From IMG/VR virus record IMGVR_UViG_3300047510_001118, positions 62,001-126,000 of that record: DNA of 64,000 nucleotides; one strand, given 5' to 3'. The notes beneath the pieces are model-generated. The model worked only from the letters and a program-made list of their open reading frames with translations, searched no databases and was not told the origin of the DNA. The stretch's first letter is position 1. Every line of letters starts with the position of its first letter. Made by a program: the position numbers and the translations under genes. Positions 41,245-54,176 of the stretch are shown here, one piece after another.

Positions 41245-41436
41245 CTAGGCCACGTGGTCTTTACGGGGCACAGGTGTCATCTCTGGGTCTATCATCAGGG
41301 CCCAAAATACCCGATCTTCCCGTATGTAGAACTCTGCGTATGGCTCCACGGCGCAGGCATGTACCCACTCTGCGCACTGCCATAACTGCTCCTGAACACC
41401 CTCGGGTGCCGAAGTTCTATAACAACGTATGTACAT
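41245..41436 (-). CDS. hypothetical protein
   Basis: AGGAGCGAA RBS (41439-41447) before ATG 41436. Confidence 0.65.
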   Translation of the reverse strand: MYIRCYRTSAPEGVQEQLWQCAEWVHACAVEPYAEFYIREDRVFWALMIDPEMTPVPRKDHVA

Positions 41437-41496
41437 AATTCGCTCCTCGCTCACTGTTATTTACACAGAGCTTTAAATACTTCAAGGAGCGGGATT

Positions 41497-42847: not shown

Positions 42848-43416
42848 ATCGGTACGGACCGGTCAAGAAAAATATTGCTCATATCCTAGGTTTACCAGTA
42901 GCGACCGGTTGGGAAAACAGTGGCCGGTAGTGACCGCCGGTGTCTACCACCGTGAACCGGTATAGACCGAAACAGTGTTTTCACCATAAAAATCCCCTAG
43001 ATCGATGATAAATTACCATTCGGTCGCGACCGGTTCAAGGGTCTTTTAACCCTAGACACGGTAGGGTCACAGAGGATCTAAGTTAGTGTACGCTAACTCT
43101 AGATGCGAATAGTTCTTATCTACAGCGAAAAAACCGTTGTTCAAAAGCCACATCGGTCTCGACCGGCGGGTTAGTTAGTGCTTACTTAGAGAGAAAGTTA
43201 GTTGGCGCTTACATTTCTAGAAATGACAGGCACCCTCCACGTCCACCCCCGGACTGCCCGATCGAACGCATGTAGGACTAAGGTGTTATTATTATCGCTC
43301 TCTTAGTGTTTGCAGTATACTGTCACTCAGAGATTCTGTCAACCGGTAGTGACCGAATAGTTGAGTAGACTCTAGGGCTTTTCGGTAGTGACCGGTTGAC
43401 ATCGGTAGCGACCGGT
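42848..43416. repeat. non-coding hub of ACCGGT-N4-ACCGGT-like operator repeats
   Basis: copies at 42848, 42894, 42923, 42956, 43019, 43152, 43342, 43381, 43401; no credible ORF. Confidence 0.8.
43314..43342 (-). promoter_or_regulatory. leftward sigma70 promoter into the non-coding hub
   Basis: TTGACA-17-TATACT on the minus strand, with no start codon after its RBS-like AAGAGAGCGA. Confidence 0.7.
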
Positions 43417-43456
43417 GTTATACTATAGACTAGTTAATTAATTCAGGAGCGAACTG

Positions 43457-44158
43457 ATGAAACTGTTAAGTACTGCCAACCCAAAGATCCAGAAGGGTAC
43501 GAAACTGGGTTACTTGAGCTTTATCCTACACCTTGCGCCCGCAGATCTCAGTGGTCGTGAGACTTGCCCCAAGCGCACTCAAGGCTGCACCAGTGCATGT
43601 CTTAATACAGCGGGTCGTGGGGGTATGTTTAAACGGGGTGAAACGACTAACATGATCCAACAAGCTCGCATTCGTAAGACAAGGATGTTCTTTGAAGCTC
43701 GCGACGAATTCATGGCTCAACTAGAGAAAGACATTCGTTTAGGTATTAAGCAGGCCTCTAAGTTGGGATTGACACCCGTATTCCGTTTAAATGGTACCAG
43801 CGATCTTGCCTGGGAGAAGTACGGGATCATTGACAAGTTCCCAGGTGTACAGTTCTATGACTATACTAAGGTTTTGGGTCGCAAGGTCAGCCACTTAAAG
43901 AACTATCACTTGACGTTTTCAGCGGCAGATGGCAACGACAGAGATGTCCAAAAGGCCGTAGATCAAGGCATGAATGTGGCTGTGGTGTTCGATCGTTTGC
44001 CCGAAACTTACATGGGCAGGCGTGTGGAAGACGCTGATCAGCACGATCTGCGCTTCTTAGACCCTAAGGGTACAGTGGCAGGACTCAAAGCCAAGGGCCG
44101 TGCTAAGAAGGACACCACCGGATTTGTTCGTAAGACTATTATCTTGGAGGTTGCATAA
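43457..44158 (+). CDS. GP88-like phage protein
   Basis: CPKRTQGCTSACLNTAGRG, FRLNGTSD, FYDYTK, DLRFLDP. Confidence 0.75.
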   Translation: MKLLSTANPKIQKGTKLGYLSFILHLAPADLSGRETCPKRTQGCTSACLNTAGRGGMFKRGETTNMIQQARIRKTRMFFEARDEFMAQLEKDIRLGIKQASKLGLTPVFRLNGTSDLAWEKYGIIDKFPGVQFYDYTKVLGRKVSHLKNYHLTFSAADGNDRDVQKAVDQGMNVAVVFDRLPETYMGRRVEDADQHDLRFLDPKGTVAGLKAKGRAKKDTTGFVRKTIILEVA

Positions 44159-44346
44159 TGGCTCAATATGATCCGCAGGACGATCTACTGTTAGAGGACT
44201 TGGAGTATCGTAAGCAGATGGCCGTGGCCACCCTAAACGATGCCATCAATCAGATCTATAACATAGAGGGCGATCGCTGGCAAATGGCCTATGATACCCT
44301 GGAAGCCGTCATGGGTAATCTCAAGATAGAGGTTGACAACCGGTAG
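44158..44346 (+). CDS. hypothetical early protein
   Basis: GGAGG RBS; ends EVDNR. Confidence 0.6.
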   Translation: MAQYDPQDDLLLEDLEYRKQMAVATLNDAINQIYNIEGDRWQMAYDTLEAVMGNLKIEVDNR

Positions 44347-44391
44347 GGACCGGTGCTATACTATAGGCTAGATAGTTAAAAAGGAGCGAAG

Positions 44392-44655
44392 ATGTTTACA
44401 GTTGAAATCTACAAGAAGGATGCCCGTACTAAAGTGGGTGAGCGCATGGTCCACAAGGCAGATCATAATACCGATAACCTCTCAATGCTAGAGCACTCTG
44501 TGAAGAATACTTGGCGTGCATCACAGGGCTATCGCTACGAGATCCACGAGACCTATGTAACCCGACGGAACTTGATGGGCGGTGCGGAGTTCAAAGAACG
44601 CTATGACACGCCCTACTATTGCTCACCCAGTTCTGAATCTTATTGGAGTATGTGA
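44392..44655 (+). CDS. hypothetical early protein
   Basis: AAGGAGCGAA RBS; ends SPSSESYWSM. Confidence 0.75.
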   Translation: MFTVEIYKKDARTKVGERMVHKADHNTDNLSMLEHSVKNTWRASQGYRYEIHETYVTRRNLMGGAEFKERYDTPYYCSPSSESYWSM

Positions 44656-44656
44656 T

Positions 44657-44854
44657 ATGGCTACTGTAGACGGCGTAAGAGTACAGGTAGGGGACTGGGT
44701 CTCGTTTAAGAGCGACATAGAACAGTCGGGCAAGATCCAAGCAGTACTGTCGGGCAATAGGTTAGTGCTCACTAACCCTAACGGATTCCAGGGTGACTAC
44801 ATTGGTGGCTCGGAGACTACGATAGAACGTGCAGAGGACTGTTGGATCGAATAG
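44657..44854 (+). CDS. hypothetical early protein
   Basis: GGAG RBS before MATVDG. Confidence 0.6.
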   Translation: MATVDGVRVQVGDWVSFKSDIEQSGKIQAVLSGNRLVLTNPNGFQGDYIGGSETTIERAEDCWIE

Positions 44855-44916
44855 TGGTTGACAACCGGTACTGACCGGTTGTATACTGCAGTTATAGTAA
44901 ACAAAAAGGAGCGAAG

Positions 44917-45180
44917 ATGAATATCAGTACACTGCAAGCATTGGTAGAACAAGAGAATCGTTGGGGTAAATTGTTTGGGCGTCGTGAGCTCAGCCTGCTC
45001 CGCGCAGAAGATCGTCAGAAGATCGCTGGGATCATTGACAGCAGACTCAGCCCTGAGAACTTGACCTGCGATGGCGAGTTAAGCCGTGCAGAAGTGAACA
45101 GTCGCTATCGTCAATTGACCCGTGCGGCAGAAGAGTTGTTGAGCATTGACTCTAGTGTGACCTTTTACGAATTTAACTAA
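44917..45180 (+). CDS. hypothetical early protein
   Basis: AAGGAGCGAA RBS; LSPENLTCDGE. Confidence 0.75.
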   Translation: MNISTLQALVEQENRWGKLFGRRELSLLRAEDRQKIAGIIDSRLSPENLTCDGELSRAEVNSRYRQLTRAAEELLSIDSSVTFYEFN

Positions 45181-45190
45181 GGAGATTGAT

Positions 45191-45328
45191 ATGAACACCT
45201 ATCGTATTCAAGTGCGACTCAGTAACGGTATGGTCACTGAGACCGCTGTACAGGCTATTAGCCCTGCGATCGCCCGTGCCATGGTTGAGAGTCAGTATGG
45301 CGCAGGTTCCTTTTTGGGCTACCTTTAA
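45191..45328 (+). CDS. 45-aa early protein
   Basis: hand-translated, AAGGAG RBS. Confidence 0.6.
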   Translation: MNTYRIQVRLSNGMVTETAVQAISPAIARAMVESQYGAGSFLGYL

Positions 45329-45364
45329 TTGACAACCGGTCATGACCGGTAGTAAAGTATAACT

Positions 45365-45655
45365 ATGAAAGCAGTCAAACACACCGACGGAATACGCAGG
45401 ATCACCATGAAGATGGAGGTTGCTGTGGATGTTCGCCACTTGACCCTGTATGCACTGGACATGGTCAAAGGCGAGCAGTTCCCGGTGGACGTGATTTGTT
45501 CTGCTAACAAAAGGGAGATCTTTGCCCTAGCTCGAGCCAATATTCAGTCATTTGGTAAGGACACAGCAATTCAGAACGTGCCGCTGAGTCTAAACCCTGT
45601 AGAGATACAGCGAGCAATGGATCACGTTCGTAGTGTTTTTCCGGAGATTGATTAA
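45365..45655 (+). CDS. hypothetical early protein (leaderless)
   Basis: ATG 7 nt after the -10 box. Confidence 0.6.
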   Translation: MKAVKHTDGIRRITMKMEVAVDVRHLTLYALDMVKGEQFPVDVICSANKREIFALARANIQSFGKDTAIQNVPLSLNPVEIQRAMDHVRSVFPEID

Positions 45656-45960
45656 TGAATTCGATGCTTAGTTTGTATGGTAGACCTGTGGTCATGTTCG
45701 ATGTTAAGAACAAAGAACATCGTAGGATGGCACACCGGTTCTTGGTGGAACGTTCATGGGGTGGGTGCCCGGTGAGATTCGCCCTGCCCATTGGTGAGGG
45801 CAATGTCTACTCTATGGTCATGCGACTGTTGACCCAGTACTATTCTGCCAAAGAGTTTGGCCCTATTCCACAAGAGGACAGCGATCGTTGGCGTGAAGAT
45901 CTTGTGGCAAATACGCCACAGGTTGAATGGCGTAGAGCAACAGAGGTTGACAACCGGTAG
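45655..45960 (+). CDS. hypothetical early protein
   Basis: WGGCPVRF; ends EVDNR. Confidence 0.65.
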   Translation: MNSMLSLYGRPVVMFDVKNKEHRRMAHRFLVERSWGGCPVRFALPIGEGNVYSMVMRLLTQYYSAKEFGPIPQEDSDRWREDLVANTPQVEWRRATEVDNR

Positions 45961-46092
45961 GGACCGGTGCTATACTAATGATACTGTGAAAGTTAAGGGT
46001 GGTTCTGGCAGTCCTAGGTAAAACCTTAATTCAGAGTCAAATCAAGTGCGTGCCAACTCTGAGCCCAACTATTTTTGAAAAGGAGCGAACCT

Positions 46093-46290
46093 ATGTATGA
46101 CATCGTAAAGAACCCAATCCCCCGTAGCGGTCTATTCACTACGCCTACCCTGGAAGAGATCCAACGTCACATCAGCGGTCTACCCAGCGGTGAGCAGGCA
46201 GTGGCCAGCATGGTGTTCATGTTCACGCTGAACGCCTGTAACAAACTCGTAGAAGACGAGATCCTCTCTAAAGATGTATTCGCACAGTAA
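46093..46290 (+). CDS. hypothetical early protein
   Basis: AAGGAGCGAA RBS before MYDIV. Confidence 0.7.
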   Translation: MYDIVKNPIPRSGLFTTPTLEEIQRHISGLPSGEQAVASMVFMFTLNACNKLVEDEILSKDVFAQ

Positions 46291-46300
46291 GGAGCAGACT

Positions 46301-46576
46301 ATGAAGTCAGTACAAGAGATCAACTCAGCAATCATCCAAGGTACCTTTACCAATGACGAGCTCACTAGCATGATTGACGCTGTGAAGTTTGCACGTAGCC
46401 GTCTAAGTAACCAAATCAAATTCCAGGTGCGCAATGGTAGCACAGTGACATTCACTAGCAAACACGGTATGACTTATAGGGGCACTGTGGAGAAGGTGGC
46501 TATCAAATACGCCACAGTCAACACCCAAGTAGGTCGTTACAAGGTTCCTATGAACATGTTAGAGGTTGTTGCGTAA
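46301..46576 (+). CDS. hypothetical early protein (SH3-like C-terminus)
   Basis: AAGGAG RBS. Confidence 0.7.
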   Translation: MKSVQEINSAIIQGTFTNDELTSMIDAVKFARSRLSNQIKFQVRNGSTVTFTSKHGMTYRGTVEKVAIKYATVNTQVGRYKVPMNMLEVVA

Positions 46577-46656
46577 ACGCAACACACCGGTAACTACCGG
46601 TTGACAAGATAGCGGACCGGTAGTATACTATAGGCTAAGTTAACAAGGAGCGAACT

Positions 46657-46926
46657 ATGTTAAACATCAGCAAAATCGTCAAAGTCTACAACGGACGCAT
46701 AGGTTGTATGTGCGGCTGTAACGGAAAATATTCCTATACCGAAGACGGTGCCAGGAACTATGGCCCGGGCTACGACGTCACAGACAGCATCAATGAGCGT
46801 AGTGTGCGCATCATTGCTAAGAAGATCCTCAGCAATCCGAATGTAGAGTTTGAAAACAATTATGCGTTCGTAGAGGATCGCGTTCGTAACAAAATGCAAA
46901 TGGTGGTTTTTAAGGAGCAGGCATGA
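46657..46926 (+). CDS. hypothetical early protein
   Basis: AAGGAGCGAA RBS; GCMCGCNG. Confidence 0.75.
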   Translation: MLNISKIVKVYNGRIGCMCGCNGKYSYTEDGARNYGPGYDVTDSINERSVRIIAKKILSNPNVEFENNYAFVEDRVRNKMQMVVFKEQA

Positions 46927-47273
46927 TTAAATTTAATTGCGTATTAGAGACAGCCGGAAACGGCTACTGGTCGGACGTTGCTAAGTCTGTGAACGTCACT
47001 AAGATCAGCGTACCCTATGTCAACGAAGACGAGGACTTTGGTGAGCTCTGCGTTTACTTTGACAAGCAATGGGACACCCGCAAGGACGGGTTGATCTATA
47101 CGGACAGCCAGTTCCTTACAATGCTGAAAGACCGGCTCACAGAGTGTGGCTTTGATGCCACAGATGTAGACTACTCAGAGCAGGGCATGCAGGGCAACGA
47201 CTACGTGAGCTTAGACGTAGGCGAAAAGTTCCTAAAAAGTTGGTTCAATGTGGTTGACAAAGTTCTGGATTGA
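46923..47273 (+). CDS. hypothetical early protein
   Basis: coupled ORF; YSEQGMQG. Confidence 0.75.
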   Translation: MIKFNCVLETAGNGYWSDVAKSVNVTKISVPYVNEDEDFGELCVYFDKQWDTRKDGLIYTDSQFLTMLKDRLTECGFDATDVDYSEQGMQGNDYVSLDVGEKFLKSWFNVVDKVLD

Positions 47274-47315
47274 GCTTATACTATTAAAACAGTAACAAAT
47301 TAAGGAGCGAAACTT

Positions 47316-47795
47316 ATGGCAACTCGAAGCAGAATTGGCGTCATGCACGGAGATGTGGTCAAACACGTTTACTGTCACTGGGACGGTTATTTGAGCAATA
47401 ATGGTCAAATCCTACAAGAACACTACGATTCAACAAAGGCCAACAACTTGGTCGCGCTGGGTGACATTAGCAGTCTGCGCCCCGACATTGGTGAGAAGCA
47501 CGACTTTAGCCGTTTGGACAGCCCCCTGTCTGAAGACGAGTACGAAAAGCTCTACGGCAACATGACCACGTTCTACGGACGTGATCGCGGCGAAGAGAAC
47601 ACAGGTTGGAAGGTCAGCCACTCGTTTGAGGACTTCTTGGATCACGCTGCCGGATGCGGTGCTGAATGGTACTACATTCTCAGAGACGGTGTTTGGTATT
47701 GTGGCAACTTGTACAGCAGTGATTCACGCCACTACAAGAACTTGGTAGTACTGCGTGACAGCATTGAGTTGGAGTTGGCAGAGGAGGCAGCATGA
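47316..47795 (+). CDS. conserved phage early protein
   Basis: MATRSRIG...VYCHWDGY. Confidence 0.8.
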   Translation: MATRSRIGVMHGDVVKHVYCHWDGYLSNNGQILQEHYDSTKANNLVALGDISSLRPDIGEKHDFSRLDSPLSEDEYEKLYGNMTTFYGRDRGEENTGWKVSHSFEDFLDHAAGCGAEWYYILRDGVWYCGNLYSSDSRHYKNLVVLRDSIELELAEEAA

Positions 47796-48004
47796 AAGTT
47801 ATCGTAGAGACTGTGCTGACCCAAGAGCTTGAGGTTCCTGACAACTGGGATAGGTACGATGTGTTTGACTTCCTAGCAGAGAATCAATCCTTCCGTACAG
47901 CGTTCCAGGGTGTGAGCAACACGGACCAAACAGCCCGCATCATTGACGTGGGTGTGGTAACTGAAACAGTAACCGAAATGGGCGAGGAGGCCTTTGATGA
48001 GTAA
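47792..48004 (+). CDS. hypothetical early protein
   Basis: GGAGG RBS. Confidence 0.65.
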   Translation: MKVIVETVLTQELEVPDNWDRYDVFDFLAENQSFRTAFQGVSNTDQTARIIDVGVVTETVTEMGEEAFDE

Positions 48005-48179
48005 AATGGCAGAATTGGATATGTATGCTTACGATATTGAGCAACTGTATATCGATGGCTTGACTGAAAAGAACATTGCCAAGACCCTGGACATCCCCGT
48101 AGAGTACGTCTACGCTTGGATGGAGATGAATGGTGTGTGCGACGAAGAGTTCAGCCCTAACGCAACTATTAACTCCTAA
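47994..48179 (+). CDS. small HTH-like protein
   Basis: DGLTEKNIAKTLDIPVEYV. Confidence 0.55.
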   Translation: MMSKMAELDMYAYDIEQLYIDGLTEKNIAKTLDIPVEYVYAWMEMNGVCDEEFSPNATINS

Positions 48180-48190
48180 GGCCCCGCTAT

Positions 48191-48418
48191 ATGCAGATCA
48201 CAATTCAGAACCTTAGCCCTGTTGAAATCGAAATTGCGGATGCGCTTTGGGCCTGCGAGGATTTGAATGAGGTCAGAGACTACGTTCTCAGACTGCCAAA
48301 ATCATTGAGAGATCGGGCTCATGCTCTTTATCATACAATGATCTACGAAGTTATTGATCAGGAAATGGATGTTAACGATCTAGAAATGGCGAATCAAGTC
48401 ATTGACAAATATCGTTAA
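48191..48418 (+). CDS. hypothetical early protein
   Basis: 75-aa ORF. Confidence 0.6.
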   Translation: MQITIQNLSPVEIEIADALWACEDLNEVRDYVLRLPKSLRDRAHALYHTMIYEVIDQEMDVNDLEMANQVIDKYR

Positions 48419-48476
48419 TCTGCTATAATAATAAGACGATGCGGAACAGCATCTCTTTAACTACAGAGGAATTAAA

Positions 48477-48752
48477 ATGAAATACACTTTTTCTAAAGAA
48501 AGCAAGACTTTTAAAGTTTTCAACGCTCTTTATCAGGGCGAGCGTTTGACACAGAGCCAAGCCGTTAAACGTTTCGGCGTTAAGAATTTGGCTGCTGAAG
48601 CAAGCCGTATCCGTCAAAACGGTTACGCTGTCTACGCAAAGAGCCGTACTGCTGGTAATGGTGTTACCGTTACTGAGTACGAAATGGGTAATCCAAGTCG
48701 TGAGATCGTTGCTTTAGGTTACAAAGCCAAAGCAATGGGCATCACTATCTAA
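48477..48752 (+). CDS. winged-HTH DNA-binding protein
   Basis: LTQSQAVKRFGVKNLAAEASRIRQNGYAV followed by a beta-hairpin wing; own promoter; strong codon bias. Confidence 0.7.
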   Translation: MKYTFSKESKTFKVFNALYQGERLTQSQAVKRFGVKNLAAEASRIRQNGYAVYAKSRTAGNGVTVTEYEMGNPSREIVALGYKAKAMGITI

Positions 48753-48758
48753 GAATAA

Positions 48759-48895
48759 ACTCGCCGCGATGGCGATGTGAAGTCCTAGGATTCGCTCCCC
48801 TAGGCAACGGCTGAACCGATTCGCTCCCGGGTAGGCCACCGGAAGGGTACTGTAAAAGGTACCCTTCCACCTTATGTGGGTATTCAAAATACCAG
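48759..48895. ncRNA. structured intergenic RNA carrying two hairpins with identical ATTCGCTCC loops
   Basis: hairpins at 48762-48776, 48784-48804, 48809-48837 and 48841-48868 (10-bp perfect stem). Confidence 0.6.
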
Positions 48896-48954
48896 TTGAC
48901 AGTTTGGAGGATCGGCGCTATACTATGCACATAGTAAGAAGTTAGGAGCGAAAG

Positions 48955-49239
48955 ATGGAAAAAGGAACTTGCCCAGTCTGTAATGGATCAACCCGTGTGC
49001 CCGCTGGGGATAACAAATATAAATCAGTTATCGCTGGCTACGACCAGGCTACTGATACTTTTGGTTGTACCAACTGCGGGGGTCAGTATATGTACGGTCG
49101 CCCAACAGGTGAAGTTCGCTTGAACAAGGCGGGAGAGCCCTGCACTCACAAATATTCTTCTAAGACAGTGGGACGGTGCTTGACGGAATACACCTGCGAG
49201 CATTGTGGGGATCGATTCCAGATTGACAGCGGTGACTGA
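48955..49239 (+). CDS. zinc-ribbon early protein
   Basis: CPVC, CTNC, CEHC; AGGAGCGAA RBS. Confidence 0.75.
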   Translation: MEKGTCPVCNGSTRVPAGDNKYKSVIAGYDQATDTFGCTNCGGQYMYGRPTGEVRLNKAGEPCTHKYSSKTVGRCLTEYTCEHCGDRFQIDSGD

Positions 49240-49281
49240 TTGTGCTATACTATAGGTATAGTGAATGATAAGGAGCGAAAA

Positions 49282-49533
49282 ATGTTGACACTAGATAAAA
49301 TCCGTAAAATTGAATTCCGTGGCGAAGAGTTTGAACAGTTCCACGGCAGTCCGTTTGATCGCGGTGCAGCAGATAGTTATTACGGGAGACCTCAGGACCC
49401 GCATTGGTTTCCTGAAGGCACTTACAAGGGACGCCGCATTGACAGCCCTGACATGACTATGAAAGAACTTCGTGCTTACTTCGCAGGCTACGAATACAAC
49501 GAACAGCATGGCGACAAGAAGGACTGGGGTTAA
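49282..49533 (+). CDS. conserved phage early protein
   Basis: HGSPFDRGAADSYYGR; AAGGAGCGAA RBS. Confidence 0.75.
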   Translation: MLTLDKIRKIEFRGEEFEQFHGSPFDRGAADSYYGRPQDPHWFPEGTYKGRRIDSPDMTMKELRAYFAGYEYNEQHGDKKDWG

Positions 49534-49625
49534 TGGCTGACCTTGTAACCTATGTCCTACTTCGCATCATCCAGGTGGCGATACTGGTGTTTGCGATAGC
49601 AGTTTTTATCAACGGTTTTTTCTAA
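49533..49625 (+). CDS. 30-aa hydrophobic peptide
   Basis: hand-translated, coupled ORF. Confidence 0.45.
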   Translation: MADLVTYVLLRIIQVAILVFAIAVFINGFF

Positions 49626-49634
49626 GGAGCGAAT

Positions 49635-50258
49635 ATGCCTAATTGGTGCAATAACAGAGTGGTGATCAGCCACGAAGACTCAAGCAAGATGGAAGCCTTG
49701 GTAGAGGCTATCAAAGATGGTAAGTTCTGTAATCATGTGATTCCTGTGCCCGAAAGTCTACATATCGTAGCAGGCTCTGTAGGTGACCCTGATGAGCAGA
49801 AGAAGCTCGAAGAGGACACAGCCCGTAACCTAGAAGTCCACGGCTATGGCAACTGGTATGACTTCTGTGTGAATCGCTGGGGAACCAAGTGGGATGTAGA
49901 CCCTTACGATCCTACAGATGTTAAGGTTGAGAACAACACCATTGAGTTTGGTTTTGATTCAGCCTGGGCACCACCCGTGGGAGTCTACGATGAACTAGTG
50001 AATCAGGGCTTCGAAGTAGAGGCAACTTACTACGAGCCAGGCATGGCCTTTGTGGGTCGTTGGCATAATGGCTATGATGACTGCGTTGAGTTCGGCGGTG
50101 AGACCTCTGCGACTGTGCGTGATGTCATCGGAGAAGAGCTAGATGATGAGTATGGTATCTCAGAGACCATGGCTGAATACGAAGAGATGGACAAGGACGA
50201 AACTACCCAGTGGTATGAAGAGGGTGTGGAATCCAAAGGTTTAGAGCCACACAAATAA
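49635..50258 (+). CDS. YubB/DUF1281-like ferredoxin-domain protein
   Basis: MPNWCNN, WYDFC...WGTKWD, FDSAWAPP, YYEPG. Confidence 0.8.
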   Translation: MPNWCNNRVVISHEDSSKMEALVEAIKDGKFCNHVIPVPESLHIVAGSVGDPDEQKKLEEDTARNLEVHGYGNWYDFCVNRWGTKWDVDPYDPTDVKVENNTIEFGFDSAWAPPVGVYDELVNQGFEVEATYYEPGMAFVGRWHNGYDDCVEFGGETSATVRDVIGEELDDEYGISETMAEYEEMDKDETTQWYEEGVESKGLEPHK

Positions 50259-50412
50259 CAGCCACTAGGCCCTGCAACACGCCTGGGCACTTCGCTGGTG
50301 TGGCTTTTTTACAACAGGAATACCCTACTTAACCGTAGGGTTTTTCTGCTTTTTGGTTGACGGTTTGGGTGGCCCCTGCTATACTATAGAAACTGTAACA
50401 AAGGAGCGAGCA

Positions 50413-50565
50413 ATGCTGACACTGAAAGACGCTAAGAAACTGTGTGGGATGGATCCGCGCACTACGGCACGTTGGTATGCGCAGGGCTACTATATGAAGG
50501 CTGACGGACGCTGGTACATTACTGTAGGCGGTGTAGAGTATGTGAAATACTACACCGGAAACTAG
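50413..50565 (+). CDS. small early protein
   Basis: AAGGAGCGAG RBS before MLTLKD. Confidence 0.65.
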   Translation: MLTLKDAKKLCGMDPRTTARWYAQGYYMKADGRWYITVGGVEYVKYYTGN

Positions 50566-50610
50566 GGTTTTTGGTTGACAACCGGTAGTGACCGGTGCTA
50601 TAATATGAAC

Positions 50611-51249: not shown

Positions 51250-51618
51250 ATGGCAACTAGTAAACTGTACAACGTGGTAGGTATCTCTACCCTCAATGGC
51301 GACGCCAAAGTTCGCTTCGCAAATGATGTGATGCGCATCAAAGTGTTGGCTAAGAATGGTCACACTGACATCAATCTTGTAGAGCTTCCCTCTGCGATGT
51401 TGAAAACTGATGCAGCTCGCTTCTTGAGCAATCTCCCTGAGTTCCAAACTGCTGTGGCCAAGGCTGCTGTAGCAGAGTACCTTGACAAGAACGATCGTGC
51501 TCCTAAGGCACGTGTCGAAGTCAAGACTGCGGTGAAGAAAGCCGTTGAGACCAAGCCCGCAAAGGCCAAGGCTCCACGTGTGACTACTCCTGCTGAGGAC
51601 GAAGACGCACCCTTCTAA
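51250..51618 (+). CDS. hypothetical early protein with Ala/Lys-rich tail
   Basis: own promoter at 51163. Confidence 0.7.
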   Translation: MATSKLYNVVGISTLNGDAKVRFANDVMRIKVLAKNGHTDINLVELPSAMLKTDAARFLSNLPEFQTAVAKAAVAEYLDKNDRAPKARVEVKTAVKKAVETKPAKAKAPRVTTPAEDEDAPF

Positions 51619-51956: not shown

Positions 51957-52034
51957 GGGCCTCTAGCTCATGTTGGTTAGAGCAGTGGACTCATAATCCA
52001 TTGGTGCGGAGTTCGACTCTCCGGGGGCCCACCA
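51957..52034 (+). tRNA. tRNA CAT anticodon, probably Ile2 (lysidine, reads AUA)
   Basis: cloverleaf with GTGGA-CTCATAA-TCCAT arm, GTTCG T-loop, encoded CCA; resembles ileX rather than Met tRNAs. Confidence 0.9.
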
Positions 52035-52038
52035 GATC

Positions 52039-52123
52039 GCGACTGTGGTGAAATCGGTAGACACAAGAGACTTAAAATCTCTCGCTGCAAGGCGTGCCAG
52101 TTCGATTCTGGCCAGTCGCACCA
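52039..52123 (+). tRNA. tRNA-Leu(TAA)
   Basis: AGAGA-CTTAAAA-TCTCT arm, long variable arm, CCA. Confidence 0.93.
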
Positions 52124-52129
52124 AACAAT

Positions 52130-52206
52130 CTGCCCGTAGCTCAACCGGATAGAGCAACGGCCTTCTAAGCCGTAGGTTGGGGGTTCGATTCCCTCCGGGC
52201 AGGCCA
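52130..52206 (+). tRNA. tRNA-Arg(TCT)
   Basis: ACGGC-CTTCTAA-GCCGT arm, CTGCCCG/CGGGCAG acceptor stem, CCA. Confidence 0.93.
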
Positions 52207-53064: not shown

Positions 53065-53916
53065 ATGACTAATTTGGCAACTAAACCCGCAGGCTATCGT
53101 GTACTGAGTCTTGAGCAAGAAAGTCCTGCTCAAACACGTGAAACAGACGCAGAGATCATTGAACGCTTGCGTGAGCGTTTTGACATCCTTGATGACATGA
53201 CTCGTGCTGTAAAGAAAGGCGCTGTACGTGCAATGATCGTCAGTGGTGCTCCAGGCGTAGGTAAGAGCTTTGGTGTTGAGAAAGTTCTGGGCAAGCATGA
53301 TCTAATGGCCAATATCGCCAACGATGAAAAGCTCAAGAAGTACGAGATCGTCAAGGGTGCGATGTCAGCAATTGGCTTGTACTCAAAGCTCTATGAGTTC
53401 TCAGCAGAGAAGAACATCCTAGTGTTCGACGACTGTGACTCAGTACTGTTAGATGATCTTAGCCTTAACATTCTAAAGGCTGCTCTAGATACAAGTAAGA
53501 AGCGTACCATCCATTGGAACACTGACAGCAGACTGTTACGCAGTGAAGGTGTGCCCAATTCGTTTGAGTTCAAGGGTGGTGCTATCTTTATTACCAATAT
53601 CAACTTTCAGAACATCAAGAGCAAGAAGTTACAGGATCACTTGGCAGCTCTGGAAAGCCGTTGCCACTACATTGATCTAACCATACACACAGAGCGTGAG
53701 AAGATGTTGCGCATCAAACAGATCGTAGGCGATGGCATGCTCAACGAGTATGAGTTCTCAGAAGAGCAGACAGCAGAGCTTATTGGGTTTATTGACCTTA
53801 ACAAGAAGCGTCTACGCGAGCTGAGCCTGCGTACAGTACTAAAGACTGCAGACCTTATGCGCAGTTTCCCTGGGGACAAATGGCAGCGTGTAGCACAGAT
53901 CAGCCTAATGAAGTAA
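53065..53916 (+). CDS. P-loop AAA-like ATPase
   Basis: Walker A GAPGVGKS, Walker B LVFDDCD, FITN. Confidence 0.85.
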   Translation: MTNLATKPAGYRVLSLEQESPAQTRETDAEIIERLRERFDILDDMTRAVKKGAVRAMIVSGAPGVGKSFGVEKVLGKHDLMANIANDEKLKKYEIVKGAMSAIGLYSKLYEFSAEKNILVFDDCDSVLLDDLSLNILKAALDTSKKRTIHWNTDSRLLRSEGVPNSFEFKGGAIFITNINFQNIKSKKLQDHLAALESRCHYIDLTIHTEREKMLRIKQIVGDGMLNEYEFSEEQTAELIGFIDLNKKRLRELSLRTVLKTADLMRSFPGDKWQRVAQISLMK

Positions 53917-53917
53917 C

Positions 53918-53934
53918 GCTAGTTCGCTCCTAGC
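53918..53934. other. hairpin displaying TTCGCTC(C), antisense to the early RBS
   Basis: GCTAG-TTCGCTC-CTAGC. Confidence 0.6.
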
Positions 53935-53937
53935 CTT

Positions 53938-53965
53938 AGAGGATCCTTCGGGGTCCTCTTTTTTT
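53938..53965 (+). terminator. intrinsic terminator ending the early array
   Basis: AGAGGATCC-TTCG-GGGTCCTCT followed by a T-run. Confidence 0.9.
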
Positions 53966-54176
53966 ATCAAAAATTTTTTCGTCGAGGAGGTTAGAAAAAA
54001 TCTTTTCGAAAAAAAATTCGGTGAGGGGTAGTAAAATAAAACTGTTGTAAAAAAACAACATAGTGGTAACAAATCACCAGGCCACCGAAAAAATACCCTA
54101 TACTTTAATTTTTTACGGTGCAGTTTTTTAAAACCAGAGTGGACCCATTCGGGCCAAGTTCCTCGCTATATACTGT

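Follow-up and report, generated by a model that had tools for sequence, protein, structure and literature searches.

Introduction

Few small RNAs are known in phages, and most of these act on a single phage target (c4, sar, OOP) or on host genes. The c4 antisense RNA of phages P1 and P7, which is mentioned in PMC8546580, is reported (Citron and Schuster 1990) to be a structured RNA in which two loops pair with target sequences that include a ribosome-binding site (RBS), blocking translation; it is made from the same operon as protein genes, acts on one downstream target (icd/ant) in its own transcript, controls immunity in a temperate phage and is matured by RNase P. Among bacterial RNAs, the cuckoo/CcsR small RNAs of Alphaproteobacteria consist of tandem hairpins that each display the same C-rich anti-Shine-Dalgarno (SD) type motif, CCUCCUCCC, in the loop, and are cut from the 3' UTR of a small protein gene (PMC8034643). 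In phage T4, the translational repressor RegA and the endoribonuclease RegB shut down many early messages post-transcriptionally at their translation initiation regions, and early messages are marked by an extended SD signature, GGAGRAYARAA for RegB (PMC3014915). Enterobacterial small RNAs derived from 3' UTRs, such as CpxQ, SroC and DapZ, combine a seed region, usually single-stranded and presented by Hfq, with the terminator hairpin and U-tail of the parental message, and target host messages. Finally, in staphylococcal RNAIII and the Rsa small RNAs, which are host-encoded, C-rich hairpin loops with a short generic UCCC motif start pairing with the SD sequences of several messages.

Here, we analysed a 64,000-nt stretch (the window) of a 278-kb IMG/VR contig of an uncultured giant freshwater phage. 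An earlier note, made from the sequence alone, described two hairpins with identical loops after a winged helix-turn-helix (wHTH) gene, the loops being the reverse complement of the RBS of early genes, and proposed either a phage antisense RNA that shuts off a whole regulon of early genes or, if the region is transcribed leftward, a CsrB-like sponge. We find that what the note described is present in the sequence, whereas the interpretation offered there is supported only in part.

Results

The hairpin loops are complementary to an over-represented RBS

The window encodes helicases, a primase and virion proteins. Positions 42-54 kb on the plus strand form an early region of many small genes, in which at least 17 near-consensus sigma-70-type promoters (TTGACA-N17/18-TATACT or TATAAT) drive short transcription units. 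The wHTH gene lies in its own unit, the limits of which (48402-48895) coincide with a perfect promoter and with the next promoter at 48896. To determine whether the sequence after the wHTH stop codon forms the described hairpins, we folded positions 48745-48900 of the plus strand with RNAfold. The predicted fold has an energy of -53.5 kcal/mol (z = -3.0 against shuffles) and contains exactly the two described hairpins as well as three further stems (Table 1). Both loops are fully open in the predicted ensemble, with an opening cost of 0.02 kcal/mol.

The 9-nt loop sequence ATTCGCTCC occurs 6 times in the window against 0.25 expected. Its 8-mer core is the exact complement of GGAGCGAA, which occurs 17 times against 0.89 expected. 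Twelve plus-strand copies of GGAGCGAA between 43446 and 52660 lie 1-4 nt before an ATG, and most of these have a TTGACA-N17/18-TATACT promoter about 55 nt upstream. The 9-mer GGAGCGAAT is perfect at the leaders of 49635, 52292/52295 and, on the minus strand, 41436, as stated in the note. By contrast, the two minus-strand copies inside the hairpins are not RBSs, also as stated there: no ATG, GTG or TTG follows the copy at 48798 within 12 nt, and only a TTG at +12 follows the copy at 48827.

The RBS motif is not spread evenly over early genes. It marks the promoter-proximal cistron of 13 early transcription units, counting two one-mismatch forms, while downstream cistrons use ordinary, varied SD sequences. 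The leaders are short, AT-rich and largely unstructured, and opening the RBS costs 0.3-3.8 kcal/mol. Moreover, we identified a third hairpin with the same loop core, which starts 2 nt after the stop codon of the last early gene (53065-53916), encoding an AAA-ATPase-like protein of phrog_1250, and ends 3 nt before the strong intrinsic terminator that closes the early region. Using a covariance model, no further copies were found in the window beyond hairpins 1 and 2.

Table 1. Positions of the anti-RBS hairpins and associated features in the window.
Position	Strand	Feature	Observations
48402-48429	+	Promoter of the wHTH/anti-RBS transcription unit	TTGACA, 16 nt, TATAAT, with TG before the -10; 12 of 12, one of only four perfect matches in 41-56 kb
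48438-48453	+	5' leader hairpin of the wHTH message	GATGC-GGAACA-GCATC, followed by the non-GAGCGA RBS AGAGGAA; a leader hairpin with an AAAGGAAAC or AGAGGAAA RBS is conserved in the 59 distinct wHTH leaders
48477-48752	+	wHTH protein gene, 91 aa	Pfam HTH_39, E = 8e-6, 26 bits against a 21.3-bit cut-off; phrog_4973
48761-48775	+	Small 3' UTR hairpin	TCGCC-GCGAT-GGCGA; the stem covaries in close relatives (CGTC/GACG, CGCC/GGCG)
48784-48804	+	Anti-RBS hairpin 1	CCTAGG (48784-48789), loop ATTCGCTCC (48790-48798), CCTAGG (48799-48804)
48809-48837	+	Anti-RBS hairpin 2	GGCT-GAA-CCG (48809-48818), loop ATTCGCTCC (48819-48827), CGG-GTA-GGCC (48828-48837); contains the clade-wide 15-mer CCGATTCGCTCCCGG at 48816-48830
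48841-48868	+	11-bp terminal stem-loop, probably a weak terminator or 3' protective hairpin	Followed by ACCUUAU rather than a U-run
48879-48893	+	Hairpin	In the RNAfold prediction
48896-48924	+	Promoter of the next early gene (48955-49239)	
48945-48952	+	Example target, GGAGCGAA RBS of the gene 48955-49239	Other GGAGCGAA leaders at 43446, 44383, 44908, 46082, 46647, 47304, 49272, 49626, 52285 and 52660; one-mismatch forms at 50403 and 53056
51957-52206		Three tRNAs	
53918-53934	+	Third anti-RBS hairpin	GCTAG-TTCGCTC-CTAGC
53938-53966	+	Intrinsic terminator closing the early region	Hairpin at 53938-53959; 9-bp stem, then T7

The element is a conserved RNA motif found after three unrelated early genes

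To determine whether the hairpins are conserved, we searched IMG/VR for relatives of the wHTH protein. Of 196 relatives, the 80 retrieved are 73-87% identical apart from the window's own contig, and in 47 of these 80 loci the gene is followed within 200 nt by the element. Usually, the element is one long hairpin with an invariant 17-nt tip, CCGAUUCGCUCCCGGGG, followed by a terminator hairpin and a U-run on the same strand, which is the layout of a 3' UTR-derived small RNA. The window's own subgroup has two or three shorter tandem hairpins instead. Among these close relatives, the double-hairpin block is far more conserved than synonymous sites in the gene. In the related locus L013, hairpin 1 has the compensated stem CCUUGG/CCAAGG with the same loop. 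The terminal stem has been completely rewritten in relatives while keeping its pairing, and is followed by ACCUUUUGG in L013. At the position homologous to the third hairpin, two other related loci, L002 and L020, read AAGG-TTCGCTC-CCTT and CTGG-TTCGCTC-CCGG, respectively.

The motif is not tied to the wHTH gene, a point on which the note's proposal has to be corrected. In an exact-match scan for the 15-mer, limited to 120 stretches, the element was found on the coding strand after a stop codon, and before or inside an intrinsic terminator, at no fewer than 40 distinct sites after the wHTH gene, 31 after the ATPase-like gene and 12 after a gene for a roughly 100-aa 'KKNP' protein, i.e. in the same orientation at 83 of 83 in-context sites. 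One contig can carry several copies. After the ATPase-like gene, the motif forms the tip of the terminator hairpin itself. In total, at least 80 related sequences carry the element.

Loss of loop conservation had been named in the note as grounds for rejecting its proposal; however, a 17-nt core is invariant in 27 aligned homologues, and UUCGCUC is present in every element copy examined. To determine whether the stems are maintained by compensatory changes, we first aligned the wHTH-type elements with MAFFT and applied RNAalifold, which recovered only the inner 3 bp because stem lengths vary. The terminator-type set gave a usable gapless alignment. In this set, the enclosing 9-bp stem differs in almost every sequence yet stays paired, all 9 pairs show compensatory changes, and the covariation was 0.54 against 0.17 in shuffles (0 of 500 reached it) and 0.13-0.37 when the pairing partner was slid. 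Of 80 distinct homologues, 60 fold with the CCG/9-nt loop/CGG hairpin, loop open, on top of a longer stem. Among relatives, the covariance model found one loop variant, CCGA-UUCGCUC-UCGG, which keeps UUCGCUC. This heptamer, the complement of GAGCGAA, is the only sequence shared by all hairpin variants. The note had also proposed co-variation of loop and RBS as a test; both partners are invariant in every relative found, leaving no variation to score. An attempt to reach distant relatives through the ATPase-like protein returned at least 8000 homologues in public data, and all 120 listed were at least 90% identical; no distant relatives were reached. Altogether, these observations support that the element is a new, widespread and well-structured phage RNA family.

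Rfam scans of the whole window at the gathering threshold, and of the region and two relatives at E up to 10, returned nothing above threshold. A tRNA-like or T-arm-like reading was rejected: ARAGORN and the Rfam tRNA model identified only the three true tRNAs of the window, and in the 7-nt loop form UUCGCUC position 58 would be C rather than the A58 of a T-loop. Searches of the PDB sequences and NCBIfam added nothing on the wHTH, ATPase-like or KKNP proteins. blastn against cultured phages gave no match, and tblastn with the wHTH protein detected only Pelagibacter phage HTVC008M at 33% identity. The host is not known; a scan of 596 Gb of genome contigs with the 15-mer, in which about 1100 chance hits are expected, was uninformative and gave hits in scattered high-GC genomes without hairpin or leader context.

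The element co-occurs with GGAGCG-type RBSs

To determine whether the element is linked to the RBS, we compared wHTH loci with and without it. The 47 loci with the element have 3-16 GGAGCG-type RBSs each on the same strand, while the 32 loci without it have 0-2. CGAA is by far the commonest 4-mer after GGAG in element loci (131 of 552) and is absent from the top list in the others. This association is local rather than genome-wide and is confounded by phylogeny: contig 3300017917_001336 has a wHTH gene without the element in a region lacking GGAGCG RBSs, yet carries the element after its ATPase-like gene in an RBS-rich region elsewhere. The wHTH tree needs about 5 changes of element presence, at least 2 of them forced; however, this 90-column tree is poorly resolved and the gene may move between genomic contexts. 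Thus, the association is real, but it is not a set of independent events.

Two of the three carrier messages do not use the target at their own RBS. GAGCGA was found in 0 of 32 wHTH leaders from element loci and in 0 of 11 KKNP leaders, and both messages have a conserved 5' stem-loop instead. By contrast, the ATPase-like message, for which the note's proposal has to be corrected, carries (G)GAGCGA in 70 of 80 leaders and the loop at its 3' end in 27 loci. To determine whether GAGCGAA is avoided at other sites, we counted it outside RBS positions; the 17 occurrences equal the median for permuted 7-mers, and this lack of depletion neither helps nor hurts the pairing model.

A further correction concerns the restriction to early genes. 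In other large viral contigs of similar GC content, a CsgF-like gene lies behind a T4-late-like TAAATA promoter, and its leader can read CCGGGAGCGAAUCGG or CGGGAGCGAACCG directly before the ATG. These leaders, with CCGGGAGCGAATCGG directly before an ATG, are complementary to 11-15 nt of the element and place the RBS in a hairpin loop, which suits loop-loop pairing; whether the same contigs carry the element was not established. The GAGCGA signature is, then, clade-wide and not strictly early.

Comparison with described systems

Compared to the cuckoo/CcsR RNAs, the closest analogue in architecture, the loop is AUUCGCUCC, matching a phage-specific extended RBS, rather than CCUCCUCCC; the neighbouring gene encodes an HTH_39 protein and not DUF1127; no Rfam family, ar14 included, reaches its threshold; and the element is phage-encoded and often embedded in the terminator loop. 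With regard to c4, there is no sequence or covariance-model similarity, and there are about 13 potential targets in separate early transcription units of a large, probably lytic phage, in which lysogeny genes were not looked for. RegA and RegB are proteins whereas the effector proposed here is an RNA, and no homology is implied. As in 3' UTR-derived enterobacterial small RNAs, the element lies on the coding strand directly after a stop codon, shares the parental message's terminator, and has a conserved accessible seed complementary to the 13 promoter-proximal (G)GAGCGA leaders of the window; however, the seed sits in a hairpin loop, is repeated and matches the phage's own RBS signature, and no information on chaperone dependence was obtained. 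There is no relation to RNAIII or the Rsa RNAs in sequence or context. Unlike a CsrB/RsmZ-type sponge with multiple GGA-containing loops, the plus strand shows UUCGCUCC. Finally, a GC-rich hairpin followed by a U-run, as expected of an intrinsic terminator, is present at the end of the early region and in the ATPase-type relatives, whereas the terminal stem-loop after the wHTH gene lacks the U-run.

Discussion

The simplest account of these observations, to which we assign a probability of about 0.5, is a plus-strand regulatory RNA from the 3' UTR or terminator. In this view, the wHTH gene is transcribed together with a structured 3' UTR of about 120 nt, which, like the similar hairpin at the end of the early region, presents UUCGCUC(C), the Watson-Crick complement of the extended SD element (G)GAGCGAA on the first cistron of most early transcription units, in open loops. 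The hairpin-plus-terminator part would persist as a stable RNA, either as the 3' end of the message or as a processed fragment; being structured and ending in a terminator, it should outlive the early messages, and its loops would pair with the early RBSs, compete with 30S ribosomal subunits and progressively turn down translation of the early regulon as the RNA accumulates, as an RNA counterpart of T4 RegA and RegB. The 8-bp duplex is -12.4 kcal/mol compared to roughly -6 to -10 kcal/mol for pairing with the 16S rRNA tail; RNAduplex predictions of whole leaders against the whole UTR gave unrealistic long-range duplexes, and only the 8-mer duplex and opening energies were used. On the other hand, a 9-nt loop closed by 3 bp can form only about 6-7 bp without opening the stem. 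While the structure, strand, conservation, complementarity, co-occurrence with the RBS and exemption of two carrier genes rest on the analyses reported here, accumulation of the RNA, pairing in vivo and repression are inferences, for which there is no expression, processing or stability evidence, and neither transcriptome data nor a cultured relative exists. If the mechanism is right, this would be a virus-encoded RNA regulator that addresses a whole class of the virus's own messages through a private extension of the SD sequence, and it would explain why CGAA after GGAG is so strictly conserved in a very abundant group of environmental giant phages.

More tentatively, this very abundant clade may use an RNA in place of proteins such as RegA/RegB to time its early program, with multi-copy hairpins titrating the clade-specific extended RBS GGAGCGAA on about a dozen early transcription units at once and the messages that carry the hairpins escaping by using a different RBS. 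Because related phages share the same RBS signature, a stable RNA of this kind would also block early translation of a related phage that infects the same cell later, giving RNA-based superinfection exclusion. Even without the mechanism, the structured RNA family could be curated, and because its promoters match the sigma-70 consensus, the element can probably be tested in E. coli without the unknown host.

A serious rival, although we consider it unlikely, is that the hairpin binds a protein to control termination or message stability at the ends of early transcription units, in the way lambda boxB/N or RAT/LicT-type elements do, with the complementarity to the RBS being secondary or coincidental. 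The conserved block UAARY-CCG-AUUCGCUCC-CGG(GG) extends beyond the anti-RBS core and includes an inner stem that never covaries, which pairing with the RBS does not explain and which hints at a protein partner. Moreover, the element always sits at ends of transcription units and, in the ATPase-type sites, is the apical part of the terminator hairpin. However, this model does not explain an exact 7-9-nt complement of the most over-represented RBS, the restriction to neighbourhoods using that RBS, or why UUCGCUC is the only feature common to all variants while the closing stems differ (CCTAGG, GCTAG, AAGG, CCGA), and no candidate binding protein has been identified; nevertheless, a protein-binding role is not excluded. 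It is also unlikely that the loops act in cis, either by masking the RBS of the next gene on read-through transcripts, so that only promoter-initiated messages are translated, or by pairing 5' to 3' within one message to regulate or protect it. The GGAGCGAA RBS of the next gene, about 150 nt downstream of the wHTH site, together with the lack of a U-run, which makes read-through likely, and the ATPase-like message with both RBS and loop fit such models, whereas the wHTH and KKNP messages (0 of 43 leaders) do not, so that self-pairing is not general. In addition, the third hairpin and its homologues lie at the end of the early region with no downstream plus-strand GAGCGA gene, and tandem copies and strong terminators in relatives fit a released RNA better.

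The leftward, CsrB-like alternative raised in the note, in which GGAGCGAA loops would bind an RBS-binding protein or 30S subunits, is not supported and appears very improbable. The minus strand also folds (-52.3 kcal/mol, z = -2.0), and reverse complements of hairpins are themselves hairpins; however, in the minimum-energy fold the GGAGCGAA copies are largely paired or not in clean loops. No minus-strand promoter of 10/12 or better reads into the region, and in all relatives the terminator and U-run follow on the plus strand and the element lies in one-directional early operons; all three carrier contexts place UUCGCUC on the coding strand in front of a same-strand terminator. Only slightly less improbable is a double-stranded DNA site, for example an operator for the wHTH protein or another regulator. 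This would explain the appearance of the motif in both orientations, as an RBS and inverted after genes; the 15-mer occurs in both orientations in related contigs, and a DNA-binding protein gene lies immediately upstream in many loci. However, long enclosing stems with compensatory changes and a following U-run are RNA features, the orientation after genes is strictly fixed, wHTH genes also occur without the motif, and the sequence is not palindromic beyond CCG/CGG. Moreover, a different and better operator candidate, ACCGGT-N4-ACCGGT, sits in the promoter spacers.

Promoter-associated and leader elements

In a subset of early promoters, the direct repeat ACCGGT-N4-ACCGGT lies in or next to the -35/-10 spacer. 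It occurs 10 times, allowing up to 1 mismatch, against 0.05 expected. The repeat looks like an operator and is a better candidate DNA target for a phage repressor, perhaps the wHTH protein, than the anti-RBS motif.

The wHTH message has a conserved 5' stem-loop of the GCUGA...UCAGC type right after the -10 as well as a conserved AAAGGAAAC or AGAGGAAA RBS, and both are present in loci with and without the anti-RBS element. The leaders of the messages for the KKNP protein have a similar 5' hairpin. This may be a 5' stabiliser or a separate regulatory element. In many relatives, including the loci L005, L006, L012, L014, L016, L025 and L034, a conserved CCGGCACTCC motif lies between the wHTH terminator and the next -35, 5-25 nt upstream of the next TTGACA. 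By contrast, the motif is absent from this position in the window, whose only copy, at 1085, is at chance level.

The leader of the minus-strand gene starting at 41436 carries tandem GAGCGA-GGAGCGAAU behind a GTAAATAA late-type promoter-like sequence. Thus, the RBS signature also occurs outside the sigma-70 early units.

Locations of the additional features, in the window or in related contigs (L numbers)
Location	Strand	Feature
42848-50596 (e.g. 44339-44354, 44864-44879, 45335-45350, 45953-45968, 50581-50596)	+	Direct repeat ACCGGT-N4-ACCGGT
48438-48453, and homologous leaders in L002-L077		5' stem-loop of the wHTH message
51250-51618	+	Homologue of the KKNP protein
53065-53916	+	AAA-ATPase-like early protein
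41436-41470	-	Leader with tandem GAGCGA-GGAGCGAAU
L106 4213-8480, and L318-L360		Heme-oxygenase-like, bilin-reductase-like, CsgF-like and CsgG-like genes

Proteins encoded in the window and in related contigs

The window encodes a homologue of the roughly 100-aa KKNP protein, which has a conserved N-terminal region and a KKNP motif near the C-terminus, and which carries the anti-RBS element in other contigs. Here, the gene is followed only by a terminator overlapping the next promoter, and searches of the protein against Pfam, PHROG and NCBIfam returned no match.

Related large viral contigs encode heme-oxygenase-like and bilin-reductase-like genes. Moreover, they carry CsgF-like and CsgG-like (curli secretion) genes behind T4-late-like TAAATA promoters, which suggests a host with an outer membrane.

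Finally, the AAA-ATPase-like early protein (phrog_1250, weak AAA_16 match) has at least 8000 homologues with E up to 1e-10 in public metagenomes, and some contigs reach 330-380 kb. We conclude that this phage clade is very abundant and that its genomes may exceed the 278-kb contig.
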